Sequence record: PV764602.1
Direction: 5' to 3' (one strand)
DNA length: 64,000 nucleotides
The notes beneath the pieces were generated by a model, which was not told where the DNA came from, made no database searches, and was given only the letters and a program-made list of their open reading frames with translations. The translations under genes and the position numbers were made by a program. Shown here one piece after another: positions 6,503-43,675 of the stretch. How positions within the stretch are numbered: the first letter of the stretch is position 1; each line of letters starts with the position of its first letter.

Positions 6503-8788
6503 ATGATTACCCATCAGGATACACTGTTCTCCAACATCCTATACGGAAATAATTGGAGTGCAGCTACCTACCAAGCCGCAAATCGGTTCACCATCCAAGG
6601 TGACAAGCGAACTTCGTATGAGGTAGGTACCCAGGTTCAGATTCTCACGTCTGCTGTAGCTACTATGCAGTACAGCTACGTTAGTGCAGTTACGTTCGCC
6701 TCCAACGTTACTACGGTGACGGTGAGCGACGGTCTATTCGCTTCGGGTCAGAAGATCAACGTTCGTGCATCGCCGTTTGGTGCCAACAACATGCCCCTCG
6801 GCCGACGCTTCAAAGAAATCAGCGTGTTCGGTGCGAACGGCCTGACGATCTCGAATGCGAGTCCGAAGTTCACCCTGTTCGTTGAAGGCGTTGGTGCGGG
6901 CAAGGTCAACACGTTCACTTTCCAGCCGGGCTCGGATGGTATCTCGTTCAAGGTTGGCCGTGATGCAATCGGTCTCGATGCCATGCGCATTGACGCCACT
7001 TCGACTGCCATCACCAAGGTGACGTTGTTCTCGCCCCTGACCTTTGGCGCGACGTATACGGGCGCCCTGACTTCGCTGACCGACCTTCTGACGATTGGTC
7101 AATACGCACTGACCTATTCGGCTACGGGTTCTTCGACCGGCAGCAATCGTCTGTATATCTCCGGCCCTAATGGCGGCGAGTTCACCGTTGGTCCTACCAA
7201 CGATGCTCAGGTATTCCGTCGTATTCGACTGCGTGCTACTGACGTTGTGGTCGAGAACAATCCCGGCGGTTCCTCGCAAGCAGGCTCGATCTGGCATAGC
7301 CTCAACTTCGATCCTGACACCCGTGTTACCAAGGGTCAGAATGGTTCTTGGATGGATTCGGCTTACACTGCGATCAACAACCTTAACAACGCTCAGGGGT
7401 ATTTCAACCAGTGGGCATCGGGCGCCGCACAGGCTCCTGTTGCAGGTTCGACGGGTGTTGTGCAAACCATGCACAGTGCGGGTGGCAACAACTTTAACCC
7501 TGTGGCTGGTGCTTCGCTGGTGCAGACGGCTTATGTCACCAATGGCACCGCACCTGCCCTGTATGTGCGACGCAACGTAGGTGCTTCGGGTTGGTCTGCA
7601 TGGACTAAGCTGTATACCCAAGCAGATTTCTCGCTTGGCGATTACGTCAAGATCGCAGGCGGTGATACCATCCAGTCCCCGATCACTGTACGTACTGCCT
7701 TGTCCGTTGGCACGACTGCGGATGCAACGTCCACCCTGAACTTCGGTACCTCGGCCAGTCCCAACGGTCCTGCTGCTACCATTTCTGTTACGGGCGGCGC
7801 AGCGACCACGGGTCGTGGTGCAATGACTATCAACGCGCAGTCCATCGCGCTGCCTGCACTGAACGTCAACGGTACGATGAACGTTTCGGGCGCTGCTTCG
7901 ATGGCGGGCCCACTGACCATCACTACTGGCTCCATACTGCTGGGTAACGGCACGTATGGGGAATCGCGTATTAGCAATACCTTCGACGACTGGTATTTGT
8001 ATTCCAGTCCTACGGGACTTGGCTGGTACAGTATCAGTAAGGGTAGTGCTTTCTCACTGGACAAGAACAGCAAGGCGTTCACGTTCAATGGTGCGGGTAC
8101 CATCAACGGTCAGACTACCATCAATGGTGGTCTGAACGTGGCGAGTGGTAGCGGTATCATCACTTCGGGCAACGTTGTTGGTGCCAACGGCAACTTCTCC
8201 AATGACGTGTTTGCTCCGGGCGCTTTCCGTGGTGCTCGCCTGCACATTTACGCAGGCTGCATTGCCTACGGTCAGGGCTTCCTGCCTAGCTGGAACGACT
8301 ACGGTGATGGCGCAACGGTCCTGACTAACGCACGCGGCGGTGGTACGGGCGGTTTCAAGTTCCGTCAGATGAATAGTGACGGTGGTGGTCAGGTTTTCCT
8401 TGCCTTCATCAACCCGAACGGTACCATCGGTTCGGCGTCGGACGAACGCATGAAGGAATTCGGTAAGGTACTCGACCTGTCTGACGCTCTTCGGTTCATC
8501 CGTGAGCAGCGAGTCAAGCATATCAAGTGGAAGCACACCGGCGAGGAGGATATTGCGTTTGGTGCGCAGAGCATCTTCAAGACCACTAGGTTCCTGGCCC
8601 ACTATGACAAGGGTGCTGACTTCTGGCAGCTGTACTACCCGAAGGTCGCTCTGTATCATCACGAAGCTCTCTTCCATATCCTTGAAGTGCAGAACAATCA
8701 CGAAGCCGACATTCAGATCCTGATTCGCAAGAACGAAAATCTGGAAGAGGAAGTGAAGCAGCTGCGCGAACGGTTGGATTCTCTCTAA
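6503..8788 (+). CDS. tail fibre with C-terminal intramolecular chaperone (peptidase S74)
   Basis: Gly/Thr-rich shaft; SGWSAW repeat; GSASDERMKE autocleavage motif followed by a C-terminal coiled coil. Confidence 0.85.
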   Translation: MITHQDTLFSNILYGNNWSAATYQAANRFTIQGDKRTSYEVGTQVQILTSAVATMQYSYVSAVTFASNVTTVTVSDGLFASGQKINVRASPFGANNMPLGRRFKEISVFGANGLTISNASPKFTLFVEGVGAGKVNTFTFQPGSDGISFKVGRDAIGLDAMRIDATSTAITKVTLFSPLTFGATYTGALTSLTDLLTIGQYALTYSATGSSTGSNRLYISGPNGGEFTVGPTNDAQVFRRIRLRATDVVVENNPGGSSQAGSIWHSLNFDPDTRVTKGQNGSWMDSAYTAINNLNNAQGYFNQWASGAAQAPVAGSTGVVQTMHSAGGNNFNPVAGASLVQTAYVTNGTAPALYVRRNVGASGWSAWTKLYTQADFSLGDYVKIAGGDTIQSPITVRTALSVGTTADATSTLNFGTSASPNGPAATISVTGGAATTGRGAMTINAQSIALPALNVNGTMNVSGAASMAGPLTITTGSILLGNGTYGESRISNTFDDWYLYSSPTGLGWYSISKGSAFSLDKNSKAFTFNGAGTINGQTTINGGLNVASGSGIITSGNVVGANGNFSNDVFAPGAFRGARLHIYAGCIAYGQGFLPSWNDYGDGATVLTNARGGGTGGFKFRQMNSDGGGQVFLAFINPNGTIGSASDERMKEFGKVLDLSDALRFIREQRVKHIKWKHTGEEDIAFGAQSIFKTTRFLAHYDKGADFWQLYYPKVALYHHEALFHILEVQNNHEADIQILIRKNENLEEEVKQLRERLDSL

Positions 8789-8821
8789 GGACATTGGGCA
8801 CAGGGACGTGCTCCCTTTTTA
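8786..8821 (+). promoter_or_regulatory. paired CsrA/RsmA-like sites (TAAGGACA + GCAC-AGGGAC-GTGC hairpin) followed by U-tract
   Basis: ACAGGGACGT matches (A/U)CANGGANG(U/A); the first site overlaps the fibre stop codon. Confidence 0.65.
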
Positions 8822-8831
8822 GGTAGAGGCT

Positions 8832-10223
8832 ATGTGGATCACCCCTCAGAATCAAACTCTTGATGACACGTTCGATCCATACTTTCCGGGTACAACTCGG
8901 TGGTATGGTTACACCGGCATCCTCATCAACAATACGCAAGACACCTACGATCGGTACGCTCCTTTGCAGTATGGCAGGCAAGCTCCATCCACGGCGATCC
9001 TTGCGCAGAATCAGGTAGACCTGAATCAGATTTACGCAGCCCGAGGTACAGCCGGCTACCTGCAAGGTATCTCTATCCCAAATTGCTACGTGGGCTGCTC
9101 TGGCGTTACCATCAACGATCTTCTCGCTGCTCGATGCACCATCATCATCAAGAACGACGGTACGTGGCAGCAGTGGTTCTATTCCACCAACTACAAGACG
9201 GATAGCCCGGGTGCATATGCACCTCCTAATCGTGGCATCCCTCGAACCGAAACCAACTTCAGCAACGGACGCATGAACGCCGCCGGTAACTGGGCACAGA
9301 TTCCGTTCGCTGGTGTGGGTAACAACTACGAGACTTTCTGCCACGCTCCTTGGGCTCCATACGAAAGCAAGAACCCACCTGATCTAGATTGGGGTACTGC
9401 CGATCACTATAATCGGTATGATGCTGCACTCATCAACTATATCTGGCACAACTTTAAGGGCCAAGGACAGTTCGGTAGTGCTAGTGATCCATACGTGGTG
9501 CAGAACACTACACAGAACCCTAATGAAGACATTCCAGATGGTCGGGTATATCGCATCGACCGCGATATTCGGTTCACCCTTGGCTTGACTGCACAGGGAC
9601 GCAACAACGTTCGTTGGAACTACGATGACAACGGTGCTCTGTCATGGTACAACCGAGCCAACTTTTCGGTGTACATTCAGACACCCGGCGGCGGTCAGCG
9701 TGTAGGTGCCACCTGCCTTATGACCAATGAGATTCGTTGGAATGCGTGGAATTGGACGGGTGGTAGTGTCGGCGGCGGTGGTGGCGGTGGTGGCGGTGGT
9801 TGCGTTGCTGCTACCAGCTATGTTGACTTCCAAAAGACCGCAGGCACTGTTGAGGCAGGCGACTACCTCATGGGTATGACGGATGATCTGCAATTTATGG
9901 AGCTACACGTCCTGAGTGTGCGTCGTCAAGTGCAACCGTGTGTCCGACTCTACTCAAAGAGTGGCGTCACCCTTGTGTGCTCAAAGTCCACGCCGCTGAC
10001 CCTACAGAACGGAGATTGCGTGCTGGCAGGCGAAGCACGAGCAGGTATCAAGCTTCCGGTACGATTCTTCGCGGCTGATCCTGAGTGGGAAACCATCGTC
10101 AAGATCGAGGAGGTTGGCAACCGGGAAGTGATGCTCATCAACTGCGGTGGACAGAGCTATGCTGCCGGTGAGTTGCCGGGCCGCTATATCTACACCCACA
10201 ACAACAACCAGCAGAAGATGTGA
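8832..10223 (+). CDS. putative tail-tip adhesin with poly-Gly linker and C-terminal Hint domain
   Basis: Three N-terminal repeats ending DLNQIYAARGTA; G10 at 9771-9800, then CVAATSYV (block A, Cys at 9801) and IYTHN (block G, 10197-10202). Confidence 0.75.
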   Translation: MWITPQNQTLDDTFDPYFPGTTRWYGYTGILINNTQDTYDRYAPLQYGRQAPSTAILAQNQVDLNQIYAARGTAGYLQGISIPNCYVGCSGVTINDLLAARCTIIIKNDGTWQQWFYSTNYKTDSPGAYAPPNRGIPRTETNFSNGRMNAAGNWAQIPFAGVGNNYETFCHAPWAPYESKNPPDLDWGTADHYNRYDAALINYIWHNFKGQGQFGSASDPYVVQNTTQNPNEDIPDGRVYRIDRDIRFTLGLTAQGRNNVRWNYDDNGALSWYNRANFSVYIQTPGGGQRVGATCLMTNEIRWNAWNWTGGSVGGGGGGGGGGCVAATSYVDFQKTAGTVEAGDYLMGMTDDLQFMELHVLSVRRQVQPCVRLYSKSGVTLVCSKSTPLTLQNGDCVLAGEARAGIKLPVRFFAADPEWETIVKIEEVGNREVMLINCGGQSYAAGELPGRYIYTHNNNQQKM

Positions 10224-10656: not shown

Positions 10657-10685
10657 TAAGGACATAAGGCTACGGATAGCAGCCT
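10657..10685 (+). promoter_or_regulatory. paired CsrA-like sites TAAGGACA and GCT-ACGGAT-AGC hairpin
   Basis: Two ANGGAY cores 14 nt apart in the leader of the 10722 gene. Confidence 0.5.
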
Positions 10686-11958: not shown

Positions 11959-12684
11959 ATGACCATGAGCACGGAAACCGTTCTGATCGGTCTTGGCTGT
12001 CTACCTGATAACGCTCAAGCCCTTGAGGGGGCGTGCATTCGGTACGGCATCGAGACTACGTGGCACAAGTCCATTTTCATCGGACAGATCGCTGTAGAAA
12101 CAGGTGGCTTCCGTGCCACCCGCGAAAGCATGAATTACAGCGTTGAAGGTCTTATCAATGGTTTTGGCCGTCACCGTATCAGTGTGGCGGACGCTCAGAA
12201 ATACGGGCGTATTGATAAGGTCGTGAACGGCAAGAAAACTGTTATCCGAGCAGCTAACCAAGTAGCCATCGCCAACATCCTGTACGGCGGTGAGTGGGGA
12301 CGCAAGAATTTGGGTAATACCGAGTTGAACGACGGATGGAATTTCAGGGGCGGCGGTGACAAGCAATTGACTGGCCGCGCTAATTGGACCAACTACAGCA
12401 TGGACACCTATGGTGACTTGCGTGTGCTGGAGAATCCTACTCTGATCGAACTCTATCCCGACAAGAGCTACACTGCTGGTTGGTTCTGGCAACGCAACAA
12501 GCTGGGTGACATTGCTTCGCAATATGTGCTCCCTGATGATCCCAAATCTCCGGAGTACGATTCCATCCTGCGTTCTACTGTTACGGTAGTTACCAAGAAG
12601 GTCAACGGCGGTGACAAGGGTTTGGAGGATCGCATCATGTGGACGAAAAAGGCCCTGCAAGGCTTCAATCAACTCGTACTGTGA
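11959..12684 (+). CDS. endolysin, glycoside hydrolase family 19
   Basis: FIGQIAVETGGF, DGWNFRGGGDKQLTGRANW, VTKKVNGG..GLEDR motifs. Confidence 0.9.
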   Translation: MTMSTETVLIGLGCLPDNAQALEGACIRYGIETTWHKSIFIGQIAVETGGFRATRESMNYSVEGLINGFGRHRISVADAQKYGRIDKVVNGKKTVIRAANQVAIANILYGGEWGRKNLGNTELNDGWNFRGGGDKQLTGRANWTNYSMDTYGDLRVLENPTLIELYPDKSYTAGWFWQRNKLGDIASQYVLPDDPKSPEYDSILRSTVTVVTKKVNGGDKGLEDRIMWTKKALQGFNQLVL

Positions 12685-13700: not shown

Positions 13701-16085
13701 ATGCCGCTGCCCACTTCCATCCAACCCATCATTGAGAATACTCCGGACATTCTCAAAGCATGTGTTGAAGTCTATCAGTCCATGTCTCTGCTACAGGACC
13801 GGGGCTTCATGTTCTTGAACGAGCAGATTGAATTGCTCACGTCTACGGGTCAGGTGGCACACGTCACCACTGCGTATGGTACTCAGGTTGAGTTGCCCAC
13901 GTATCATACTCTGGCAGCCACCTCGAACGCCTCTACGGAATTGGTGCAGCAGTTTCAGCGCCAAATCTACGACGTGTTCACTAGCAACAACCCGACGGTA
14001 ATCATTAGTGACGGTCTTGGTAACGACACTCAGGTGATCGGCTATCAGACCATGAACGACAAGGTTAACGCTACGTCGGACGTGGCTTCTATCGCCAACA
14101 CCAACGCGCTCAACGCGCTGGGTAAGGCCACCGAAGCGCTGAACCGTGTTACCAACTCCGAGCTCAACGCCAACGTGGCTTTGGCGAACGGCACACCACC
14201 CACCTATCAGACGCGTTCGGTTCTCGATACTGTTACGACGATGCAACGCAATAGTATCGCCTACGTGATCGCTGATCCGGTTCCCACCAACAACACCATC
14301 TACCAGTACAACGGTACTGCATGGACTCCTCAGTATGATCGGCTGCTGACCGCCCTAGGTAGTCCGCGTGGCTATCTGGCCCCACTCACGGGCGCTATCT
14401 ACCGTACCTATCAGAGCAAGCTAGAATCACTGGTTACTCCTGAAGACGTGGGGGCCAAGGGTGACGGCACTACTGATGACGGTCCCGCCTTCATCGCCGC
14501 CGCTGCGAACGGGCGCCTGATTGTGCTGTCCCCCAACAAGACCTACCGTATCACCTCCAACGCCACTGTAGGCAGCATCATGCCTAATGGCTCCAAGATT
14601 TCCATCGGTCCGGGCGCTACCCTGACTTTTGATGGCCTGATCGTGGACGATGCTACGGTTGTGTTTACGGGTGAGGGCAACGCCGTCAGCAGCACTAGCG
14701 TCTACAGCGTTGGCTGGTTCGCAGGTGATAGCTTTAACGCCAAGTGGCTCGCCATGAAGCGTGGTTTCACCCAGCAGGTAGTCAAGTACGTCACGCTGCC
14801 GATGCCGCACCGCACCGATCCTGCGGCAACTACCGCAGCTTCGGACGGTCAGGCACGTTGGAAGCTTACGGACTCTGTGGTCTTCAACAATACGGAATCT
14901 AACCTGATCGTCAATGCGCTGGGCGAATTCCTTGTGGACCAGTCCGCCTCGCTGTCGGCAGGTGCTTTCATCCTTGGCGAGCTGACTGCCCCCTCCAGCA
15001 TCAACTTCCCGAACGGCTTGCGCGTCCTGTGTAACGGTAGTGCAACTTATGGTCTGCGCGTTCGCGGCGGTAGCAGCATCAGTTTTGAAGAACTACTGGT
15101 TCTGGACAGTGCAACCAACTCCGGCATCCTGTGGGACAACTATAACGGCCCGAGTCATCGCATTAGCTTCGACCGCGTGCGTATCGACGGCTTTGGTGTG
15201 GCAGGCGTAACTATCCAGCCGCAGGGTGGCCCGAGCTATCCGAACCAATCGCCTCCGATCACTTCGTGTTCGATCAATTCGCTGCAAACGCGAGGCGGTC
15301 GTAGCGGCTGCACGAACTTCGTCAAGATCGCGGGTAACGTGGATGGCCTGACCATCACCAACGTCCTTGAAGATCGTCCGTCGGGTAGCCTGCTGTTCGA
15401 CTGGAGCGATTCCATGTTCTCGCTGACTAACACTCAGTACGGCACGATTGGTCGCTCCGGTTTGGAGATTGGTCACATTCAGGCGACCAGCACCCAGCTG
15501 CCCATCATCCGTGCGTTCGACAGCACTTCCGCTGCTGACCCTGCGAATGGCAAGATCACGTTCTCGGTAGAGCACATCTATCAGGCGTATCAGCAGAACA
15601 TCGTTCCGGTCATCATGGAATACTCGAAGAACTGCACCATCGGACGTATCAACGCAGGACGCCCCACCTCTAGTCAGGAAGTGCTTGTCCGTATCTTCCG
15701 CGACTGCGAGGGTATTTCTCTGACCGGTACACACTACACCGCTGTTCGTAGTCAGGCCCTGCGTACTCAGTTTGACGGACGCTTCGGCATGGTGGACGTG
15801 GTGCAGCAGAACTCTGCGATCTTCACGGATCTAAACACTGCGGCACTGACGTTCAAGTTTGACCTAATCTGCCTCACCTCCGCGTCTACTTACGCTTCGG
15901 GTTGGGCAGGCGCCAACGCTCTCGATATTCCCACGTCGCTGACCAAGAATATCAACGTTGCCCAGGGTCCGCTGGAAGGAACGACCGGCCCTGAAAGCAC
16001 CCTCAGCATCAGTGCTGCGGAAAACAAGTTCTTTGTGGAAAACCGAACCGGACAGAATCAGCTCGTTGCGGTTCTCATGTCCTAA
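13701..16085 (+). CDS. tailspike / polysaccharide depolymerase (beta-helix)
   Basis: VTPEDVGAKGDGTTDDGPAFIAA pectate-lyase-3-type start, then beta-helix-like repeats. Confidence 0.8.
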   Translation: MPLPTSIQPIIENTPDILKACVEVYQSMSLLQDRGFMFLNEQIELLTSTGQVAHVTTAYGTQVELPTYHTLAATSNASTELVQQFQRQIYDVFTSNNPTVIISDGLGNDTQVIGYQTMNDKVNATSDVASIANTNALNALGKATEALNRVTNSELNANVALANGTPPTYQTRSVLDTVTTMQRNSIAYVIADPVPTNNTIYQYNGTAWTPQYDRLLTALGSPRGYLAPLTGAIYRTYQSKLESLVTPEDVGAKGDGTTDDGPAFIAAAANGRLIVLSPNKTYRITSNATVGSIMPNGSKISIGPGATLTFDGLIVDDATVVFTGEGNAVSSTSVYSVGWFAGDSFNAKWLAMKRGFTQQVVKYVTLPMPHRTDPAATTAASDGQARWKLTDSVVFNNTESNLIVNALGEFLVDQSASLSAGAFILGELTAPSSINFPNGLRVLCNGSATYGLRVRGGSSISFEELLVLDSATNSGILWDNYNGPSHRISFDRVRIDGFGVAGVTIQPQGGPSYPNQSPPITSCSINSLQTRGGRSGCTNFVKIAGNVDGLTITNVLEDRPSGSLLFDWSDSMFSLTNTQYGTIGRSGLEIGHIQATSTQLPIIRAFDSTSAADPANGKITFSVEHIYQAYQQNIVPVIMEYSKNCTIGRINAGRPTSSQEVLVRIFRDCEGISLTGTHYTAVRSQALRTQFDGRFGMVDVVQQNSAIFTDLNTAALTFKFDLICLTSASTYASGWAGANALDIPTSLTKNINVAQGPLEGTTGPESTLSISAAENKFFVENRTGQNQLVAVLMS

Positions 16086-16091
16086 CGTGGT

Positions 16092-16116
16092 GGTCACATG
16101 GACGTGACCCTTTCTT
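16092..16116 (+). promoter_or_regulatory. CsrA/RsmA-like hairpin GGTCAC-ATGGAC-GTGACC
   Basis: ACATGGACGT is a perfect Rsm consensus in a 6-bp stem, just upstream of the lipoprotein RBS. Confidence 0.65.
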
Positions 16117-16126
16117 GAGGTGCACA

Positions 16127-16270
16127 ATGAAGCTATTGGTATTGATCGGAGTGCTAGCTCTGGCAGGCTGCAACTCGATGCCTACGCCGTCCAAGCCGCT
16201 GAACACTGGGGACGAAACGCAACCTCCTCCGGGTTGTGTGGAACTACGTAAGCAAGGAGGCAAGTGCTAA
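16127..16270 (+). CDS. 47-aa lipoprotein (absent from ORF track)
   Basis: Hand translation MKLLVLIGVLALAGCNSMPTPSKPLNTGDETQPPPGCVELRKQGGKC; lipobox LAGC; GAGG RBS. Confidence 0.8.
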   Translation: MKLLVLIGVLALAGCNSMPTPSKPLNTGDETQPPPGCVELRKQGGKC

Positions 16271-16692
16271 TGGCCCTGTCGGTACAAGATTACACGGCAC
16301 TGCGACGCATCCACTCCAAGGCAATGTCTGCCTTCAAGTATGTGTCGGACAAAACCAAATGGGGACTGGTAGAGTATTGGGAACCCGAGGACGTACTGTT
16401 CCCCGTAGGTGCTAGGTTTACGGGAGATTGCGAAGAATTCGCTAGAGTGTGCATGCAGGAAAGCATCAAGGCCGGTTACAAAGCACGGCTCGTTGCATGC
16501 CTTACTGAAGGTGGCGAAGGCCACTGCATCTGTGAGGTGGCGGATGAGGAAGAAACGGGATCGTTCTTCTTAGACAACCGCAAGACCAACATCGTTACCA
16601 AACTGGGATTGACTGGCTACAAGTTCTACAGCGTGTCGCCTTGGAATCCCCAATTTAGCGAGACTCGGCCGTGGAGGCTGGTCAAGGAGTAA
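16270..16692 (+). CDS. bacterial transglutaminase-like cysteine proteinase (BTLCP / LapG-like, peptidase C93)
   Basis: WGLVEYW, GDCEEFA, GEGHC and LDNR give the Cys-His-Asp triad; AAGGAGG RBS before ATG 16270. Confidence 0.85.
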   Translation: MALSVQDYTALRRIHSKAMSAFKYVSDKTKWGLVEYWEPEDVLFPVGARFTGDCEEFARVCMQESIKAGYKARLVACLTEGGEGHCICEVADEEETGSFFLDNRKTNIVTKLGLTGYKFYSVSPWNPQFSETRPWRLVKE

Positions 16693-16914: not shown

Positions 16915-16924
16915 GCCAAAAGAA

Positions 16925-16960
16925 AAGGGCCACCCCTTTCGGAGCGGCCCTTATGTTGTT
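16925..16960 (+). terminator. Rho-independent terminator
   Basis: AAGGGCC...GGCCCTT followed by ATGTTGTT; A-tract upstream suggests it is bidirectional. Confidence 0.65.
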
Positions 16961-17026
16961 GGGTTGGACTGCAAGGATGCTAGTGTCCAGGAGTTAAGGG
17001 GAGCACGATGCTCCCCTTCTTTTTTA
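16951..17026 (+). ncRNA. candidate GGA-rich Csr/Rsm-type small RNA
   Basis: Non-coding gap with four GGA motifs, including GC-AAGGAT-GC, ending in a hairpin plus U-tract. Confidence 0.35.
16996..17025 (+). terminator. Rho-independent terminator (also ends the minus-strand island)
   Basis: AAGGGGAGCA-CGA-TGCTCCCCTT followed by CTTTTTT. Confidence 0.75.
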
Positions 17027-30249: not shown

Positions 30250-31047
30250 ATGTATGTGTTTACCAACACCTCAGCTAATCAGATGACGTTCGGCGACCTG
30301 ACGCTGGCCCCGAACGCCACCACTGAATTCCCTGACGATCGGGTGGCTGCTCTGAGCACCCACAACCTGAAAGCGCTCAACGATTTTGCCAACGGCAATC
30401 CGCTGATCCTGAAGGTCGAGTATCAGGCTTCGGTTCCGCCGGTCACCATCGGTCCTGTATCCGCCGCTCCTGCCATTTCTACTCCGTTCGGTAACAAACT
30501 GATGCAGGCTGCTGATGCAGATGCTGCTAAGGAACTGCTCGGGGAAGGTCAAGGTAGTGGCTATACGTTGCCTGTCGCTACGGGCTCGGTCCTTGGTGGC
30601 GTCAAGATCGGTGCGGGCCTTAGTGCTACCGCCGATGGCACCCTGAGTCGCAGCGCCCTTGTTGCCGGAGACATTCCAGATTTGGACGCCGCCAAGATCG
30701 CCTCCGGCACTCTGGCGGTTGCGCGTTTGGGTACTGGCACTCCAAGTGCTGCTAACGTGCTTTTGGGTTCGGGCGCTTTTGGCGTACCTCCGACTGCTAC
30801 TAAGGCAACCGCTCTGGCTACGGGCCGTACCTTCACTCTGAGTGGCGGGGCTTCCGGTACCACCGCCTCTCCGTTCGATGGCTCTGCTAACGCCACCCTC
30901 AACGTTACGCTGGCTACTCCGACAAGTGCTCTCCGTGGCGGTGTCCTCCAGCAGGCCGCCATTGCTGACTTGACCGCCGCTCCTACCCAGCAGGATTTCA
31001 ACGCCCTGCTGGCAGCCCTGCGTGCAGCCTCGGTAATCGCTTCCTGA
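30250..31047 (+). CDS. head fibre / decoration protein
   Basis: YTLPVATGSVLGGVKIG repeat; C-terminal QAAIADL...DFNALLAALRAA head-fibre motif. Confidence 0.7.
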   Translation: MYVFTNTSANQMTFGDLTLAPNATTEFPDDRVAALSTHNLKALNDFANGNPLILKVEYQASVPPVTIGPVSAAPAISTPFGNKLMQAADADAAKELLGEGQGSGYTLPVATGSVLGGVKIGAGLSATADGTLSRSALVAGDIPDLDAAKIASGTLAVARLGTGTPSAANVLLGSGAFGVPPTATKATALATGRTFTLSGGASGTTASPFDGSANATLNVTLATPTSALRGGVLQQAAIADLTAAPTQQDFNALLAALRAASVIAS

Positions 31048-31055
31048 CAACAACC

Positions 31056-31071
31056 GGGCCAAGGACGGCCC
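31056..31071 (+). promoter_or_regulatory. CsrA-like hairpin GGGCC-AAGGAC-GGCCC
   Basis: Its 14-nt core GGCCAAGGACGGCC is identical to the one at 41943. Confidence 0.6.
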
Positions 31072-31178
31072 ACTAGTCGGGTAAACCTTTCAAATTAGCC
31101 GGGTAAGGGTGCCTCAAATACGGTACTTGGCAGCTAATTTTACTGTGAAGGCGAGGGCTATTCCTCCGTGCTTTTCAG

Positions 31179-32525
31179 GTGCAGGGATTCACCACTTCCT
31201 ATGGCCTCAACTCAATGTCAGCCTTTCCTAATGTAATCAATGACGCTGTTGTCGGACAACAAGTCGTAGCCAACGCGAGCTTCTTCATTGCTCCTAACAC
31301 GGATACGACCGGATTGATTGCCCGGTACAGTATCGTAGACGCAGACGATGCGGAGTGGACTTCCGGCATCGCCACAAACATTGTGGTGTCGCCTCTAGGT
31401 TCGCGCTCCAAGGTGAATGCCTCGGCTTCGGTCGATATTCCCTACACGCTACCTGTCGAGTTCTACGGTACCAAGTATCAACTGGCGTGGACCCTTGAAA
31501 CTCAAGATGGTACATTCGTTTCCAGTTATATCGAGTCGTTCAACGTCAAGCCTGTCATGCAGGGTGGCGTGTTCGGCGTACCGGACATCGTAGAAGCAGC
31601 AACAGACAAAACGATTCTCAAAGCGGTACTGCCTTCCAACGATCAAGTGGAAGTGCTGGTGTTCAAGGGCAACGCCTGCCTTAACAACGGCAGCCCTGTC
31701 ATCCTGCAACCGGGTGACAAGGTATTCAACGGTACGCAGTATCTGGGTAGTTTCAACCATGCTACCCTGCGTAACCCCGGAGCGTCCCCTCCCCCGAATT
31801 CTGCGTTGGGGATCAACCAGCCGTCCCCTGCTCTCATACAAGCGATGGCAGCAGCGCGCGGCTTGAACCCCGCCGACATTACAGCCAGCAATGAATCGCT
31901 GACTCCTTCACTTGAGCCCTATAACTTGTGGTGGCAATACAAGGATGAGGATTCGGGTGAGGTAGTTGTCGAGGATAGCTATCTGTATCATGTGACTCCA
32001 ATGATCCTACAGGCAGGACGGGAGCTACAACAGTTTGTGAACCGCGCTAACAACGAAGGCCGGTTGCAGGAACTGACCATCGACCTGAACGTAATCATTC
32101 ACTTCCTGAAGCAAGGCGGCGACTACTTCAACAGTGTCGGTATGCCAACCTTCTTTGACTTCACCTGTGCTAATGGACCCTTCCGTCAATTCTGGGTCAT
32201 GTGCAGTGCAGTGCGTCTCCTCCGTAGTCAGTACCTTCTGGAGGCCGAACGTAGTATGGTGATGCAGGGCCAGAGCGTTACACTGGACATTGACATTACT
32301 GCGTACTACGAAACTGCGGCATCGGATGCCCAAGCATTCGTTGACCAATACTTGCCGGAGTTCAAGCAGAATATCACACGCAAGGGTCTGCTGACCGGCG
32401 ACGGTGACTACGGCAACGGCGGCATCATTTCGAGGAACGTGGGTGCTATGGGCATTCAGTTGTCCGCGACCACCAACCTGTTCTTCGGTTGGCGTAATCA
32501 GTACGCACGCCGTGGCCTGTTCTAA
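31179..32525 (+). CDS. virion structural protein (neck / head-tail-like)
   Basis: 448 aa; start uncertain (GTG 31179 or ATG 31215); genomic context only. Confidence 0.6.
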   Translation: MQGFTTSYGLNSMSAFPNVINDAVVGQQVVANASFFIAPNTDTTGLIARYSIVDADDAEWTSGIATNIVVSPLGSRSKVNASASVDIPYTLPVEFYGTKYQLAWTLETQDGTFVSSYIESFNVKPVMQGGVFGVPDIVEAATDKTILKAVLPSNDQVEVLVFKGNACLNNGSPVILQPGDKVFNGTQYLGSFNHATLRNPGASPPPNSALGINQPSPALIQAMAAARGLNPADITASNESLTPSLEPYNLWWQYKDEDSGEVVVEDSYLYHVTPMILQAGRELQQFVNRANNEGRLQELTIDLNVIIHFLKQGGDYFNSVGMPTFFDFTCANGPFRQFWVMCSAVRLLRSQYLLEAERSMVMQGQSVTLDIDITAYYETAASDAQAFVDQYLPEFKQNITRKGLLTGDGDYGNGGIISRNVGAMGIQLSATTNLFFGWRNQYARRGLF

Positions 32526-33535: not shown

Positions 33536-34396
33536 ATGAACGCAAGCTTCAATGACCGCATCGGTGCTCGTCTGGCCCAGCGCACTAACGGCATCAAGCC
33601 GCACGCTGACATTCTGAGCTACGAACTGGTTAGCCCGACCGTGGCTAAGGTTGTCGTCGCCCACTCTCACCGTGGCACCACTGCTGAGAATCGCGCCGCT
33701 CTGGCTTCGCTGCTGGAAGGCCGTGGCAACGTCATACCGCACAGCTTCCGCGAAATCGAAACGGACAACGCCCACCAGCGCCGTATGCTGTCGGTCGGTT
33801 TCGTTGGCGCCAACGTCCTGTCTGAGGAACTGAGCGAAGAACGCGCCAGTCAGCTGAAGGAGATTGCCAAGAACGTGCTGATGGACGACACCGACAACAG
33901 CATGTGGCAGGTTACGCAGGCTTCGGACGGCCGCAAGTTCATCCGCCGTCAGCACAACGAAGACCTTGCGGAGCTGATGACCGCTACCGCTTCGGTGAAC
34001 CCGGCCGCCATCGTGCCGAAGCACTTCACCGAAATCGCTGGCACCACCGTCGATACCTCGGGCCCGTTCACCTATGCTGCTTACGTGGACGCTGACACCC
34101 ATCAGGTGCGTTTCGGTTACGTGGTGGAACACGCTACCGTCTACAACGGCTACAAGCACACCATTCTGCCGCGTGACGCTTCGGAAGTCGAGTACGTGTC
34201 TGCCTCCCTGATCGTGGAAGCCGCCTACAACGTCGATCCGAACAACCGTCTGACCACCGCTCGCAACCGCTTGATGGAAACCGCCGGTATTCCGGACATT
34301 GATGCGGTCAAGAGCTACTTCCGTAAGGAATTCGGCTACGGCCCTGAGTTCCTGCGCGAACTGGAAGCCGAGATTGACGAGCACGCTGTCGCCTAA
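33536..34396 (+). CDS. virion/head protein
   Basis: ATG 33536 after GGAG; very strong codon bias suggests high expression; METAG near the C-terminus. Confidence 0.7.
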   Translation: MNASFNDRIGARLAQRTNGIKPHADILSYELVSPTVAKVVVAHSHRGTTAENRAALASLLEGRGNVIPHSFREIETDNAHQRRMLSVGFVGANVLSEELSEERASQLKEIAKNVLMDDTDNSMWQVTQASDGRKFIRRQHNEDLAELMTATASVNPAAIVPKHFTEIAGTTVDTSGPFTYAAYVDADTHQVRFGYVVEHATVYNGYKHTILPRDASEVEYVSASLIVEAAYNVDPNNRLTTARNRLMETAGIPDIDAVKSYFRKEFGYGPEFLRELEAEIDEHAVA

Positions 34397-34403
34397 CGAG
34401 CCT

Positions 34404-34433
34404 AGCCGCCCCTGAAAGATGGGGCGGCTTTGT
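34404..34433 (+). terminator. Rho-independent terminator
   Basis: AGCCGCCCC-TGAAAGAT-GGGGCGGCT followed by TTG. Confidence 0.65.
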
Positions 34434-34475
34434 GCCATCCACAACATTGATCCCAAGAAACACTGAGGACTGCAC

Positions 34476-34964
34476 ATGCCTTCCATTACCACCAACCGTT
34501 CCAAGGCAACCCTGCTCGGTACCTACTTCCGCAAGGAAACGGTCATGGAGCCGAACGGTTTTTCGATTGCCCTCATCACTTCGGCTGGTGTCAGCACCAA
34601 CCCGGGTGAGCAGGTTGCCCCCACTCCGTCGAACTGCCTGACTTGGTCCGACTGCTCGCAGAACGAAATCCCGGCCGGTAACGGCTACGTGGCAGGCGGC
34701 ATCGCCATTCAGCGTGGCACCGCCGACTGGACCTCGCTGACTGAGGACCCGACCAACAACCGTGCGTTCGTTACCCTCAAGAACGTTTCGTGGACTGCTA
34801 CCGGCGGTAACCTGCCCGCCAGCGGCCCGGGTGCAGCCTATGCCGTGCTGATGGACGACACTGCGAATCGCAACGTGCTGATCGTGCTGGACCTCGGCGG
34901 TGCACGTACTGTTTCGGACACCCAGCAGCTGATCCTCCAGAACGTCCAGTACATCGCAACCTAA
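34476..34964 (+). CDS. conserved phage structural protein
   Basis: NE...GNGYVAGG ... VSWTATGG..PA..AVL motif common in virion proteins upstream of fibres. Confidence 0.7.
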   Translation: MPSITTNRSKATLLGTYFRKETVMEPNGFSIALITSAGVSTNPGEQVAPTPSNCLTWSDCSQNEIPAGNGYVAGGIAIQRGTADWTSLTEDPTNNRAFVTLKNVSWTATGGNLPASGPGAAYAVLMDDTANRNVLIVLDLGGARTVSDTQQLILQNVQYIAT

Positions 34965-37870: not shown

Positions 37871-39808
37871 ATGACGATTCTTCAAACGCTGTACCCAATC
37901 CCGGATAACGTCCCACGAACTGATGCTTCGTTCAACACCTTCACTGGGGTCAACCGATTCACTAGGGTGGTGGCAGGTAATTCAACCCCGAACGAAGCAT
38001 ACGATCTATGTGCTGGGACTACAAAGATCGGAAGCACCCTAACCGTTATTGGCGATACTACGCTCAACATTGCCAAAGCTGCGTTACTGACAATTACGGG
38101 TAGTAACGCCATGATCTTCCAAGGCTTTGGAAGCTCTCAGGGCCGTATCACCCTGTTCGGTTGGCTAGGTGTCGATTCCGGCGATACTCTGGCCATCATC
38201 GACCGCGTAGGTATGTCCAACTATCGCTGGGCGCTCAGTGCAAGTCAGATGACGCTCAACGATAATGCTGTGTGGCATGCAGGCAACTTCAATCCCGATC
38301 TGTACCTCAAGGTCGCTGACGCGTCTTCTACTTACGTCAAGCTTGCCAACAGTAACAACAACATCACGGGCACGGTGTGGGGACTTCGCTCGGTCACTGC
38401 ATCGGGCTCCGACACCTTGTCCATACAGATTCAGTCGGGCGGTGCCTATCAGTACGGACGTGGCGCTGTATTGGAATTGAATGGCAAGAACGCAACTGGC
38501 AGCAACGCTGGCGGCTTCCGTCTGCTCAGTGACGGTCCCTCGGCGATCAATTCGTACTCCGGCACTCTATCCCTAGCTGCCTCGGGCGGTGGTCAGATTA
38601 CGTTCAACAGCTCCGGCCTGTCTCTGCAAGGGGCCACGAGTGTTGCAGGTGCAACCACATTTGCCTCTACGGTAGCAGTTACTGGCCTCATCACTGCCAC
38701 TGGCCAACTAAAGGTTGGGCCTGCTTCCGGCGAAGCGCGTATCAACTTTGGTCTGGACACGGGCTACATCTACAGTAGTGCCACCTCAATTGGCTACTAT
38801 TGGCCCGGTAGTAGCGCTGTCAACTTGTGGCGTCTTATTAAACCGGGCCAAAGCGAAGGTGTTTACCCTGCCTTGTCTATGATCGTGTCGGGAGGGGGTT
38901 ATTTCGACGGTATTGTTCGGGCTACCTCTAGTCTCATCAGCATCCACCCGGACGCCCTGCGTATGCGGCAATCCGCCCGCACCGTTATTCACCGCTTTGA
39001 CGGCAACGCTTATTACTGGCTTCGTACTGCGGCTGACGACCCCGATGGTGTCTGGGATTCCGCACGTCCTATGACCTATAATGTTGGTGGGGACCAGTTG
39101 ACGTTCAACCCTGCTGGTGGCGTAACCATGCAGACCCAGCTGACACTTTCCTTTAATGCGCCATTCCGACTCACGGGCTTTGGTGCAGCAGGCGCTATAT
39201 ACATTCACGGTACCAATGGTGCAGGCGATGACGTTTGCAGCATCTTACGCAACAATGCCAACTCTAACTACACGCTGACGTGGAACGGTGGTGTCACGAT
39301 CACTGGTGCTCAGACAGTAGCAGGCGAAGCTTACTGCAACAATTGGTTCCGCAGCAATAGCTCCGGCACTGGCTGGTATCATCAGGTACATGGCGGTGGT
39401 TGGTACATGTCGGATAACGATTACGTGCGTTCGTACAATCAGAAGGCAGTGGCTGGCTCTGATTTCGTGATTTGGTCTGATCGCCGTTCCAAGACCGAAG
39501 ACCGTGACTTGAACATTACTGACGTTCTTCCCAAATTCATGGGACTTGCCCCAAAGTGGTATGTCAAGAATGGCACGAAGGCCGAGTACGGCATGTTCGC
39601 ACAGGACGTGCGCGCACTGTTCCCCGATATGGTCAGCCTGACCAACAACGAAGGATATGACGATTACCACTTCCTCTGGATTAACATGCTTCATGCTCCC
39701 CACATTCTTGTGACCCAGGATAACGTGCGCCGCATCGAAGAACTGGAGGGTATCGTGGCCTCGCAGCAGCATCAGATCGCGCAGCTGCAATCTAGGCTTG
39801 AGGTGTAA
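37871..39808 (+). CDS. distal tail fibre A with S74 chaperone
   Basis: Starts MTILQTLYPIPDNVPR; NNWFRS...GWY...GGGWYM.D repeat; WSDRRSK motif followed by a coiled coil. Confidence 0.85.
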   Translation: MTILQTLYPIPDNVPRTDASFNTFTGVNRFTRVVAGNSTPNEAYDLCAGTTKIGSTLTVIGDTTLNIAKAALLTITGSNAMIFQGFGSSQGRITLFGWLGVDSGDTLAIIDRVGMSNYRWALSASQMTLNDNAVWHAGNFNPDLYLKVADASSTYVKLANSNNNITGTVWGLRSVTASGSDTLSIQIQSGGAYQYGRGAVLELNGKNATGSNAGGFRLLSDGPSAINSYSGTLSLAASGGGQITFNSSGLSLQGATSVAGATTFASTVAVTGLITATGQLKVGPASGEARINFGLDTGYIYSSATSIGYYWPGSSAVNLWRLIKPGQSEGVYPALSMIVSGGGYFDGIVRATSSLISIHPDALRMRQSARTVIHRFDGNAYYWLRTAADDPDGVWDSARPMTYNVGGDQLTFNPAGGVTMQTQLTLSFNAPFRLTGFGAAGAIYIHGTNGAGDDVCSILRNNANSNYTLTWNGGVTITGAQTVAGEAYCNNWFRSNSSGTGWYHQVHGGGWYMSDNDYVRSYNQKAVAGSDFVIWSDRRSKTEDRDLNITDVLPKFMGLAPKWYVKNGTKAEYGMFAQDVRALFPDMVSLTNNEGYDDYHFLWINMLHAPHILVTQDNVRRIEELEGIVASQQHQIAQLQSRLEV

Positions 39809-39809
39809 C

Positions 39810-41936
39810 ATGACGATTCTCCAGACTCTGTATCCCATCCCCGATAATGTTCCACGTCTGGACGCAACTGGCGTGCAGACTTTTGCCAACACGGTTCGTT
39901 TCGGTCGAGTGCTAGCAGGAACTAGCGTGGCGGAAGAATCGGGCTTCGGCCTAATCACCACCAACGCCAAGGTCACAGGCTATCTTAACGTAGCCTTAGC
40001 CGCCACACTGACCAGCACGTCTAACGTGTTCGGTGGCTTCTCGGTCGCAGGTAACGCAATCTTTGGTGGCAGCAGCTTGCAGATCGTTGGTGATGGCAAC
40101 ATTTATCTGACCTTCCGCACTACCTCGAACCAAACGGACACTCAGTTAATTACGGACCGGGGTGCTAAGGGTTTCATCATCCGTAATTGGGTGACTCTTG
40201 GTACTGGTTCGTACACCGACTTCTCATTGAATGCGGCAACGGGTGCTCTCAAGTGGGGCGCGCAGGATATTTACCACTCGGGTACCTTTAACTGGAAAAC
40301 CTTCGCGGTCAAAGATGATCGAAACCGCTTCTCCATTCTAGACCTAGCCTCTTACGTTAGTTGGGGTACTCTCCGATTCCTTGACCCTGCTGACCTGTCA
40401 GCCACTGGCCTTCGCTATTACGTAACTACCGATACTACCTCGTGGGCTTTGAACACTGCGAATGATGATGGGAACTGGCGACGCACTCGTTTTCGCGTTC
40501 CCCGAGATAGTGCCTCACCTGTGCAAATCGACGGCGGAGCTGCTTGGTTCGTTGGAAATCTTCCGTCCCCTGCTGATACGACCAAGGCTGCCATCATTGA
40601 AAGCAGCAGCTTCGCTTGGGAATTCCGCGCTGCTCCTGTACCCCAGGAAGTTAACAGTTGGCAGTGGGGCCCCTTCGTACTGCGAGGTTATGACTCCGCG
40701 GGCAATAACGTGCGTTCGTTTGCACGACGGGCGGAGGCGGGTACGGATGCGTCTTCCATCGCTACGGGTCTTCGGAGTCAGCTAGGTGGTGTCAATCGTG
40801 CATGGATTGAGTGGTATCTCAATTCCTTCCGTATCTGTGGTGCTGATGGTACGATTTCGGCTTCTTTTAGCGACTCTGCCATCTGGCTACAGAAGCCGCT
40901 TACTTTCAGTTCTACTGCGCTGTTCAACGGCGTGGCCACCTTCTCCTCCGTCATAAGTTCACGCACCGGCACTCCTAATACTCAAATGATTTTCCACTCG
41001 ATCGGGTGGAATAATGGTGTGCAGCGTTGGGCGCAGGTGATGGAAGCGACGGGTGCTTATGTGTGGTACTGCTACAATGCCACTGGCGGTAATCCTACTT
41101 CTGTGTTGTCGATGACTAACCCCGCCAACGGGCTCGGGGGCAATAACCCCGGCATCGGCGTGGCAGGTTCGATCTATGTAACCCAAGGCATCATTGCGCC
41201 TAACTGGGGCTTCACTACCAACGATGCCAACAAGGCGTCGTTCATCGCTACCGGTAGTTACGGTGGTGGTTTCATGTGTCAAGATAACGCAGGTGCTGGT
41301 ATCTACTACGGAGGTATGTATGCTGCAAGCGGCTGGGTCGGTATTGGCCTAACCGCTGCCAACTCGGTTGGCCTTAACAAGATTCTACGACTTACGCAAG
41401 AACAGTACATGACGGTACAGACTGAAGGTGGCTTCGCCGCCCGAGGTGGCTCCGCTGTCATGGTTGTAGAGGAGCGCAGTAGCACCAACGTGCAGTTCCA
41501 TATGTACGCTACAGGTGGTGCGTGGCGTGTTTGGGATAACGTTACCGGTGCCGACAACCTCACTTGTTATCGGACTACCGGTGACTTGTATATTCGTAGT
41601 TGGGGTTACGCGGCCAACTTTGCTATCAACTCGGATCGTCGAATCAAGACGTGGATTTCTGATTTGGACCCCGAGGAAGAACTGGACAAGGTGGTGACGC
41701 TGGTTCCACGCCTGTACCTCAAGGACAACAAGCTGGAATCTGGCGTGTACGCGCAGGACGTGCAGGAACGGTGGGCCCACATGGTTACCGTGAGCGAGTC
41801 AAATCCCTATGGCATTGACGGACTCCTGACTGTGGCCCACACCATGCTACACGCTCCACTGGTTGCGTCCATCCAAGCCTTGCACGCTCGCATCGAAAAG
41901 CTGCAAGCCCGACTGCAAGAGCTTGAACCCCGATAA
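39810..41936 (+). CDS. distal tail fibre B with S74 chaperone
   Basis: Same N-terminal 16 aa as fibre A; NSDRRIK motif followed by a coiled coil. Confidence 0.85.
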   Translation: MTILQTLYPIPDNVPRLDATGVQTFANTVRFGRVLAGTSVAEESGFGLITTNAKVTGYLNVALAATLTSTSNVFGGFSVAGNAIFGGSSLQIVGDGNIYLTFRTTSNQTDTQLITDRGAKGFIIRNWVTLGTGSYTDFSLNAATGALKWGAQDIYHSGTFNWKTFAVKDDRNRFSILDLASYVSWGTLRFLDPADLSATGLRYYVTTDTTSWALNTANDDGNWRRTRFRVPRDSASPVQIDGGAAWFVGNLPSPADTTKAAIIESSSFAWEFRAAPVPQEVNSWQWGPFVLRGYDSAGNNVRSFARRAEAGTDASSIATGLRSQLGGVNRAWIEWYLNSFRICGADGTISASFSDSAIWLQKPLTFSSTALFNGVATFSSVISSRTGTPNTQMIFHSIGWNNGVQRWAQVMEATGAYVWYCYNATGGNPTSVLSMTNPANGLGGNNPGIGVAGSIYVTQGIIAPNWGFTTNDANKASFIATGSYGGGFMCQDNAGAGIYYGGMYAASGWVGIGLTAANSVGLNKILRLTQEQYMTVQTEGGFAARGGSAVMVVEERSSTNVQFHMYATGGAWRVWDNVTGADNLTCYRTTGDLYIRSWGYAANFAINSDRRIKTWISDLDPEEELDKVVTLVPRLYLKDNKLESGVYAQDVQERWAHMVTVSESNPYGIDGLLTVAHTMLHAPLVASIQALHARIEKLQARLQELEPR

Positions 41937-41956
41937 GGATACGGCCAAGGACGGCC
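41934..41956 (+). promoter_or_regulatory. paired CsrA-like sites TAAGGATA + GGCC-AAGGAC-GGCC
   Basis: The first site overlaps the fibre B stop; the second lies 12 nt downstream in a hairpin. Confidence 0.65.
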
Positions 41957-41989
41957 TCAATTTTAGGGTAGCCCTATAGAGAGTATGAC

Positions 41990-43675
41990 ATGCTACTCAA
42001 CGGTACTCCGTTTAACTTTGTTCCATTCAACCAGCCCGAGTTGGCGCCGTTGGGAGTTTTCATCAACGATACCCAGCCGGTGCAAATGTCGGTGTCAGGC
42101 ATTGGCTACCTGACAACCGCTATTATCCCGATTCAGGATAATCAGGCCATCCGCACCTCGACCACGTTCAAGCTGGTCATCCCGTATCACTTCACCACTG
42201 AATCTCCTGTTGTTGGTATCGGTCTGCTGCAAGGCACTACCATCAACTACGGCTGGAAGATGCCCACTGCTGATCCGGTCCTTGGCGTCGGCCTGTTGCA
42301 GTACCCCAGCAACATCATCGGTCAGCACTTCGAGAGCCAAGGCGAAACGGGCATAGGCATCACGCAAGAAGCGACTGTTCGCATCAACTTCCACGAGGAA
42401 GCTGGATTCAGCGATTACGCCGTTGGTAAGCTGCAAATCTCTACAGTCAAGCTCGGCTACCGTGGCGAGTCTGACTACATGCAGGGCTATGGTATCACGC
42501 AGACTACATACACCTCTGTTGGTACGAACATTATCTCGTTTACGGGTGCTGGTCGCATCGTCACCAGTATCGGGCCTGTGTTCGCCGTGTTCTATAGCGG
42601 TATCCGAATCTCTCCTGATCCAGCATTCGTTAAGCTGACCACTATCGAGGACCAACCCCGTGTTATCCTTGGTACGGTCACGCCGCGTAACCTTACTCCA
42701 CGCATCCACACGTCCACCTCGTTCAGTGCGAGTCCGGTACTGTCTACGGTGCGGCCGCGCCTCAAGCCTTCGCATATCATCACGAAGGCCGAGGCCTCCG
42801 TCAAAATCTACAAGCGCCCTGAGCCTCTAATCATCGCTGCTTCCGCTGGTCAGCATAGCGTGATTACGAAGGCGGGTAATGTGGTGGTGCATCAGGCTAC
42901 GCTCAAGCTTTCTCCCCAGCAAGCCCCTGCCATCGCCACTGCCCCCTCGGGCGGTACGTTCTTCACTACAGCTATCGTCGAGCCTGCACCTGCAACGATG
43001 CACCTCAAGGCCCTGCGTGGTACGGAGTTCCAAGAAGTGGTTGTCGAAGGCGCTGCCTCCATGCAGACCTCGGCTTCCGCTGAAATCAAGTGGGCTCCTT
43101 ACATTGTAGACCAGCAAGTCACCGTCCAGACTAACGCAAACTTCGGTCTGTACGTTGGCTCCATCGTGGTTGATGTAGGTGTGATCCCCCCTGTCTCTAT
43201 GAAGGTTGGGTTGGAAAAGGTGGTGCAGACCACGCTGACTATCGAAGACCACGTAACGTCCGCTACGTCGGCGTCGGGCGATGGCTTGATGGGAAGCATG
43301 GCGTTCTCTTACGAAGCGTCTGCGCAGGTATCGGTTGCTAACGATCCTGTGTTCCTGACTACGGCAGTTCTTAAGCCGGAGCCTGCTTCGATTACTACCA
43401 GTGCAGGTGGCCCCAAGATTCAGATGCCGCCCTTGGTTCTCGACAATGAGTTCCAAGGAAGCGTTCAAACTGACTCCGAAGGCGATGTACTGCTCGGTAC
43501 AATCAATGCAAGTTTCGTCTCTGCCAAGATCAAGACGACGGCCGAAGGTCAATTTAAGAGAGGAACGGCAAGCCCCTATAAGGGCGGTCCTGTTGTAGAT
43601 ACGGATGATCGACACATACTCAACGTTGAACCATTGAACAAACCCGGATTGAGAAGTATTAACATCCAGAACTAG
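41990..43675 (+). CDS. virion structural protein (beta-rich)
   Basis: 561 aa; LLNGTPFNFVPFN N-terminus typical of tail-associated proteins. Confidence 0.6.
   Translation: MLLNGTPFNFVPFNQPELAPLGVFINDTQPVQMSVSGIGYLTTAIIPIQDNQAIRTSTTFKLVIPYHFTTESPVVGIGLLQGTTINYGWKMPTADPVLGVGLLQYPSNIIGQHFESQGETGIGITQEATVRINFHEEAGFSDYAVGKLQISTVKLGYRGESDYMQGYGITQTTYTSVGTNIISFTGAGRIVTSIGPVFAVFYSGIRISPDPAFVKLTTIEDQPRVILGTVTPRNLTPRIHTSTSFSASPVLSTVRPRLKPSHIITKAEASVKIYKRPEPLIIAASAGQHSVITKAGNVVVHQATLKLSPQQAPAIATAPSGGTFFTTAIVEPAPATMHLKALRGTEFQEVVVEGAASMQTSASAEIKWAPYIVDQQVTVQTNANFGLYVGSIVVDVGVIPPVSMKVGLEKVVQTTLTIEDHVTSATSASGDGLMGSMAFSYEASAQVSVANDPVFLTTAVLKPEPASITTSAGGPKIQMPPLVLDNEFQGSVQTDSEGDVLLGTINASFVSAKIKTTAEGQFKRGTASPYKGGPVVDTDDRHILNVEPLNKPGLRSINIQN

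Follow-up and report, generated by a model that had tools for sequence, protein, structure and literature searches.

Short GGA-loop hairpins behind fibre and spike genes of Xanthomonas phage PhiXhv-15 are candidate operators for a CsrA-family protein

Behind a fibre-like gene of Xanthomonas phage PhiXhv-15, a GGA motif that overlaps the stop codon is followed 15 nucleotides (nt) later by a second GGA in the loop of a small hairpin, which raises the question of what the genuine element of such a junction is, and which protein might read it. PhiXhv-15 is a jumbo myovirus of 228,725 base pairs (bp) with X. hortorum pv. vitians as host, and the 64,000-nt stretch analysed here, the window, corresponds without differences to record positions 164726-228725 (PV764602.1), the final 64 kb of the genome. 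A preliminary description of the window had read the two GGAs as halves of one CsrA site that controls termination. The motifs that it quoted are all in place: TAAGGACA (8786-8793) and CAGGGACG (8801-8808) behind the fibre-like gene, TAAGGATA (41934-41941) and CAAGGACG (41946-41953) behind a second fibre gene, fibre B, and TAAGGACAT (10657) and TACGGATA (10671) in a further spacer. As set out below, the genuine feature is the hairpin rather than the two-part site. Six such hairpins occur in the genome and, judging from their sequence, we consider it somewhat probable that they are inter-cistron operators bound by a CsrA-family protein.

Scanning the window for stems that flank a hexaloop of the form A-N-GGA-N yielded four hairpins, at 8796, 16092, 31056 and 41943. 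The remainder of the PhiXhv-15 record was retrieved and scanned piecewise, each piece on its own, and contains two more, one after the ribonucleotide reductase small-subunit gene (record position 67446) and one after the csrA stop codon (record 125985-126002, minus strand). All six consist of a 4-6 bp G+C stem and the A-N-GGA-N hexaloop, and all six have a C:G closing pair, although this was not a search requirement. Every copy lies on the transcribed strand, including the one within a minus-strand gene block, and starts 6-9 nt past a stop codon, and in four of the six cases the upstream gene is fibre- or spike-like. The distance to the next start codon is about 17-40 nt at five junctions, and 107 nt to the annotated start for the 31056 copy. 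In the minimum-free-energy structures the GGA is presented in the loop in all six.

The enrichment of this design was assessed on the sense strand of all 93 spacers annotated in the phage genome, 9.4 kb in total. Hairpins with at least four Watson-Crick pairs and the A-N-GGA-N hexaloop were observed six times, versus 0.11 in dinucleotide shuffles; two or more were reached in none of the 196 shuffles, and when conditioned on all hexaloop hairpins the p value was 2.8e-6. The core C-A-N-GGA-N-G has a density of 1.6 per kb in sense spacers, 0.57 in sense coding sequence, and 0.2-0.3 in antisense. Fold energies of the whole spacers were ordinary (z -1.7 to +0.8); the signal resides in the motif and its conservation, and not in bulk spacer stability. 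Comparison with Rfam gave tRNA as the only matching family in the window or in the piece of the record that holds csrA (L005), and no Csr/Rsm small RNA at the hairpin sites. A sponge small RNA of the CsrB or RsmY/Z type, with many GGA hairpins in one RNA, is not supported, given this lack of a curated RNA family match and the single hairpin per junction.

The four window copies, all on the plus strand, differ in their stems. Hairpin 1 (8796-8813) has arms at 8796-8801 and 8808-8813 that form six pairs, one of them G-U, in the minimum-free-energy fold, with a C:G closing pair around the hexaloop AGGGAC (8802-8807), and is followed by a T5 tract (8816-8820). Hairpin 2 (16092-16109) combines a GGTCAC/GTGACC stem with the hexaloop ATGGAC (16098-16103) and is followed by CTTTCTT. 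Hairpin 3 (31056-31071; GGGCC/GGCCC) and hairpin 4 (41943-41956; GGCC/GGCC) both present the hexaloop AAGGAC, at 31061-31066 and 41947-41952, respectively, the former without a U-tract. With the covariance model described below, hairpins 1 to 4 score 26.6, 25.4, 28 and 24.5 bits. At site 1 an alternative hairpin, AGGGA-CGTGC-TCCCT (8802-8816), is contiguous with the T5 tract and would occlude the GGA. This fold is mutually exclusive with the loop-presenting one, absent from the orthologues, and unique to this phage.

The optimum RsmE/CsrA ligand, as set by the RsmE-hcnA structure, is (A/U)CANGGANG(U/A) (PMC5864733, PMC6849547). Site 1, ACAGGGACGU, and site 2, ACAUGGACGU, match all ten consensus positions, and the remaining four PhiXhv-15 sites match the eight-base core. 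A C-A-N-GGA-N-G core with its C and G paired is found in all six PhiXhv-15 copies, and in 16 of the 17 hairpins when those of relatives are included, the remaining one having a U-G pair. The high-affinity hairpin ligand at the hcnA ribosome-binding site (PDB 2JPP) likewise has a short stem with C:G closing, a hexaloop with GGA at positions 3-5, and a conserved A two bases 5' of the GGA with a variable base between. The presence of CsrA-type GGA hairpins after fibre or spike genes, a part of the preliminary description, is borne out by the consensus loop and closing pair, by conservation in relatives, and by a csrA gene in the phage itself.

This csrA gene lies outside the window (record 126012-126248, L005:26012-26248, minus strand) and encodes a protein of 78 amino acids (XYR93187), annotated as 'translational regulator CsrA'. 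The protein scores 66.9 bits against PF02599 (cut-off 27), aligns with E. coli CsrA over residues 1-56, and in a sequence search its residues 1-59 match the 2JPP RsmE chain (E 4.1e-14). The RNA-binding regions of CsrA are residues 2-7 and 40-47 (PMC5864733), and XYR93187 retains LLLTRR (residues 2-7) and the equivalent of Arg44, and carries a three-residue insertion. By these sequence comparisons XYR93187 is a bona fide CsrA-family protein. A CsrA-family gene is present in PhiXhv-15 and its four close relatives, and CsrA is unmentioned in the paper describing the phage. A scan across genomes for the origin of the phage CsrA gave matches of at most 57% identity, none from Xanthomonas, in a pattern-based search that could miss the host rsmA. 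The Shine-Dalgarno sequence of csrA is TTCACGGAGAAAC, and its 258-nt 5' leader (L005:26240-26506) is strongly structured (z = -2.95) and contains four GGA motifs, one of them in this Shine-Dalgarno sequence. The csrA trailer contains the class hairpin followed by a GGAGGA Shine-Dalgarno sequence.

To what extent are the hairpins conserved? Four further isolates are 97.5-98% identical to PhiXhv-15. In PhiXhv-12, PhiXhv-16 and Ep026, all four window spacers are the same as in PhiXhv-15 bar one nt, with genomes about 2% different overall; the sole difference is a C absent near 8814, in the 3' flank of hairpin 1, in PhiXhv-12 and PhiXhv-16. These close isolates carry zero covariation information. 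More distant, metagenomic relatives were found with the portal-like protein encoded 3' of hairpin 3 (coding sequence 31179-32525), which served as anchor (57-86% identity), and with the 463-amino-acid protein encoded downstream of hairpin 1 (51-57% identity), and single-protein scans of IMG/VR returned no relatives. At the orthologous junctions (51-86% protein identity) the hairpin is retained while the flanks have diverged, and the stems differ yet remain paired. The portal junction reads GGCC-A[AC]GGA[CT]-GGCC in five of the six relatives (L015, L014, L013, L010 and L011), in spacers that are otherwise unalignable. At the fibre B junction the stem is GGGC/GCCC in L013 (position 20926), a compensatory change compared to GGCC/GGCC, and GGGCC/GGCCC in L014 (8602). 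The site 1 orthologues have a GGCCU/GGGCC stem with loop AUGGAC (L017, 9970) and an AGGCGC/GCGCCU stem with loop ACGGAC (L018, 9967). The site 2 orthologue (L018, 19118) combines a GGGGAC/GUCCCC stem with a 7-nt loop, and scores 21.9 bits although it was outside the training set of the covariance model. The distance from stop codon to hairpin reaches up to 21 nt in relatives. This spacing also bears on a stimulator of stop-codon read-through, a candidate that was rejected; read-through of the TAA at 8786 would, moreover, add only about 25 codons up to a TGA.

In 15 aligned copies the loop A, the GGA and the closing G are invariant, whereas the second loop base can be any of the four nucleotides. 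The inner four pairs are paired in 100% of the aligned copies, with double changes at three of the four, and the covariation score is 0.438 versus 0.143 in shuffles, equalled in none of 500. These pairing statistics are partly circular, because the copies were picked by a hairpin-finding script, and they hold few independent changes, since the GGCC stem is common to many copies; moreover, the hairpin copies represent only about six lineages, all of which weakens the case for an operator. The positional argument is stronger. The covariance model assigns 24.5-28 bits to the six PhiXhv-15 copies, compared to 18.8 bits for the next best match, and in 145 kb of relatives all ten matches of at least 21.9 bits fall in the sense-strand spacers of orthologous junctions, including one untrained copy. 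The 18.8-bit match, the model's top non-member, is an antisense hairpin, GCGGGTGGC-ACGGAA-GCCACCTGT, within a glycoside hydrolase coding sequence of the window (12098-12124, minus strand), and is probably a chance match.

If the hairpins are operators, the partner would most likely be the phage CsrA, the host RsmA, or both. A bound dimer would occupy the 5' border of the ribosome-binding site that follows, and could lower or couple translation of the downstream cistron, or else protect the transcript of the upstream gene against nucleases. Since a ribosome that terminates 6-9 nt before the hairpin would unfold it, occupancy would be tied to upstream translation. A more specific scheme, which we put forward tentatively, is a circuit of the phage's own, in which its CsrA would read six dedicated operators on its own mRNAs (those behind four fibre or spike genes, behind the gene for the ribonucleotide reductase small subunit and behind csrA), and would thereby set the output of neighbouring cistrons during virion assembly, with upstream translation clearing the operator.

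Binding and its effects are inferred from sequence features, and several further observations count against binding by a CsrA-family protein. In known RsmE/CsrA systems the sites overlap or flank the regulated gene's Shine-Dalgarno sequence, usually together with a second GGA site, whereas the phage hairpins stand directly after a stop codon and a second site is inconsistently present. The downstream Shine-Dalgarno sequences (AGAGG, GAGG) are devoid of GGA, so there is no site overlap there, and the classic arrangement of a hairpin site plus a Shine-Dalgarno site is therefore not found, with the exception of the post-csrA junction, the only one with a GGA-bearing Shine-Dalgarno sequence (GGAGGA, 23-26 nt past the hairpin). 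The distribution of csrA and of the hairpins is also relevant. Among the top 120 CsrA homologues none matched the contigs of the distant relatives, and limited searches did not find csrA in the relative loci examined or in a 243-kb JGI contig. Under model R1, which is biased to G+C-rich stems, no class hairpin was found in the csrA phages VvAW1 and PSTCR8lys, nor in 74 metagenomic csrA loci. Finally, the Xanthomonas jumbo phage LucasX, which is without csrA, has one class hairpin, and host RsmA is thus still a possible partner. About 40 kb of phage XacN1 contained no class hairpin. The LucasX copy (L079, 25514-25537, minus strand) is a 9-bp hairpin with loop ACGGAG and C:G closing, and lies 5 nt past the LUCX_298 stop codon.

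Could the hairpins act without CsrA, simply as structural RNA? They might stabilise 3' ends, mark positions for RNase processing, or serve as weak intrinsic terminators by which long late transcripts are split. Their positions just past stop codons would suit such a role, as would the A/U-rich single-stranded stretch 3' of several copies, and the T-rich tails after the 8796-8813 and 16092-16109 hairpins, noted in the preliminary description, are indeed present; both of these copies look terminator-like in a consensus scan. However, a stem would suffice for these functions, and the invariant A-N-GGA loop and C:G closing pair would be unneeded. The U-tract is not conserved either: within the window it is present at 8816 and 16110, absent at 31072 and offset at 41957, and it is absent in the orthologues from L017, L018, L013 and L014. 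Furthermore, the convincing terminators of this phage have stems of 8-12 bp and UUCG-type tetraloops, compared to 4-6 bp here. We therefore regard a plain structural role as unlikely. The same stems and missing U-tracts bear on the more elaborate proposal of the preliminary description, namely that a GGA at the stop codon and the hairpin GGA 12-15 nt further on form a two-part CsrA site that governs an intrinsic terminator and read-through into the next genes. A CsrA dimer is able to bridge GGA sites 12-18 nt apart, and the loop GGA is preceded, at a distance of 12-16 nt, by a stop-overlapping TAAGGA at 8786, at 41934, and in a further relative copy (L018, minus strand). In addition, the alternative hairpin at site 1 abuts the T5 tract. 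Nevertheless, the half-site is missing in the site 1 orthologues of L017 and L018, and the fibre B half-site, 12 nt before its loop GGA, is absent in L013 and L014. Overall, a second GGA 9-25 nt upstream accompanies 7 of the 17 hairpins and is missing from ten, which is chance level (31% expected, p = 0.27). Since all seven upstream GGAs lie 12-18 nt away, and given the extra TAAGGA, a second site is unproven rather than excluded. A usable U-tract is missing in two of the four window copies, and neither this tract nor the alternative hairpin is conserved. With the stop-overlapping GGA and the U-tract both missing in orthologues, the two-part site and the terminator switch are unsupported, and we judge this combination improbable. 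Neither can the 9-mer shared between 8786 and 10657 be taken as a signal, as a back-of-envelope estimate gives thousands of such matches expected in 64 kb, and the 10657 element is a different, weaker structure.

Two other readings dispense with CsrA altogether. One holds that the loops display a Shine-Dalgarno-like sequence that pairs with the 16S rRNA 3' end, as a ribosome standby or coupling site for the next cistron. The AAGGA loops do resemble the usual AAGGA(G) Shine-Dalgarno sequence of the phage, and the hairpins lie 17-40 nt upstream of start codons, but the base 5' of the GGA can be A, C, G or U, so that anti-Shine-Dalgarno pairing would often be limited to 3 nt. Neither the invariant A of the loop nor the closing C:G pair plays a part in this pairing, and every downstream gene has its own Shine-Dalgarno sequence nearer its start, which makes this explanation quite improbable. 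The other holds that the GGCC arms, common to four of the six copies, are palindromic double-stranded DNA sites (GGCC-N6-GGCC) for a DNA-binding protein, methylase or nuclease. This is very improbable, considering that sites 1 and 3 and the orthologues have other arms that still pair, that the loop orientation tracks the direction of transcription, also in the minus-strand block copy, and that the six other GGCC-N6-GGCC sites of the genome have unrelated spacers or lie on the wrong strand.

Compared with established systems, operators for a CsrA-family protein at these junctions would have partial precedents. RsmA of Xanthomonas binds RsmU, an RNA derived by processing from the comEA 3' untranslated region in X. 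campestris (PMC7694677). RsmU shares with the phage hairpins the host genus and GGA motifs in structured RNA directly 3' of a coding region, but its GGA motifs number three or four and it works by sequestration, as a small RNA, whereas the phage has one hairpin per junction inside a polycistronic mRNA; the likeness is one of arrangement, and no sequence similarity is claimed. Translational operators of other phages, such as the MS2 coat protein operator and the T4 RegA sites, are also small RNA elements at gene junctions, through which an RNA-binding protein of the phage controls how the following cistron is translated. Their proteins and motifs are unrelated, and these operators contain the start codon or Shine-Dalgarno sequence, whereas the PhiXhv-15 hairpins lie upstream of these. 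Intrinsic (Rho-independent) terminators share the G+C stem-loop after a stop codon and, at 8816-8820 and 16110-16116, the T-rich tail. The phage hairpins differ from them by their short stems, conserved loop and unconserved U-tract, and by codirectional genes that resume after 17-40 nt at five junctions and after 107 nt at the sixth, 31056. At 16922-17018, where plus- and minus-strand gene blocks meet, the window also holds two strong, convergent terminator hairpins with T tracts and stems of 10-12 bp, and these contrast with the short GGA hairpins.

Genes for CsrA were catalogued in 30 of 2517 phage genomes, about 1% (PMC7366521), and knock-down of csrA has a phenotype in phage PTXU04 (PMC11879866). 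These reports name no RNA targets, and call the role in the phage cycle untested (PMC7366521, PMC11879866). PhiXhv-15 shares the CsrA-family gene with these phages and adds a proposed set of conserved cis sites in its own transcripts. With the hairpins, concrete candidate targets are available for the first time for a CsrA encoded by a phage, and as a small, conserved and precisely placed set in a cultured phage-host pair, they make the role of phage CsrA directly testable. If the reading is true, a phage CsrA would for the first time have a defined regulon, and CsrA-type sites, known from 5' leaders, would also occur at stop-to-start junctions within operons. If instead host RsmA is the partner, abundant late phage mRNAs that carry such sites could also alter the Rsm network of the host, by which virulence traits are controlled in Xanthomonas.

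The genes that flank the four window sites are all on the plus strand. Hairpin 1 follows the fibre-like coding sequence of 761 amino acids (6503-8788, TAA at 8786), known from the open reading frame and the GenBank annotation and without a Pfam or PHROG match, and precedes the 463-amino-acid coding sequence (8832-10223; ATG at 8832; homologues P0131 and P0132), of which the Shine-Dalgarno sequence AGAGG (8825-8829) lacks GGA. The GGA-rich spacer at 10657-10685 (plus strand) contains the unpaired TAAGGACAT followed by a weak hairpin with a 5-bp stem and the 9-nt loop ACGGATAGC; this element is outside the hexaloop class and the covariance model does not detect it. In relatives, an A(A)GGAYA motif persists here and precedes a small hairpin. 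Upstream of hairpin 2 lies a tail-spike-like coding sequence of 794 amino acids (13701-16085; PHROG 14558, tail spike, E = 1.6e-11), and downstream a lipoprotein-like coding sequence of 47 amino acids (16127-16270) and a BTLCP-family coding sequence, so named in GenBank (16270-16692); this pair gave a Peptidase_C93 match of 36.8 bits and a weak Rz-like spanin match. Hairpin 3 is preceded by a fibre-like coding sequence of 265 amino acids (30250-31047) that matches head-fibre and tail-fibre families of PHROG, and followed by the portal-like gene, annotated 'head-tail connector'. Between hairpin 3 and this gene, CGGGTAA and CCGGGTAAGG motifs are repeated at 31072-31178, and similar CCGGATAAG and CCCGGTAAG motifs are found in the relative L015; the stretch may have a promoter or regulatory function. 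Hairpin 4 stands between fibre B (39798-41936, 712 amino acids), which has a C-terminal Peptidase_S74 chaperone domain, and a coding sequence of 561 amino acids (41990-43675), the next cistron.

Two observations concern other parts of the material. Some metagenomic relatives have open reading frames that match the ADP-ribosyltransferase family PF03496 (L013, 6719-7855, and, weakly, L017, 13881-14720). In PhiXhv-15, outside the window, spacers of the early region contain a recurrent palindrome, TGCCA-AAA/TTT-TGGCA (record 34207-34745, 41781-41973, 56362-56415 and 57506-57539), which looks like a family of DNA operator sites.

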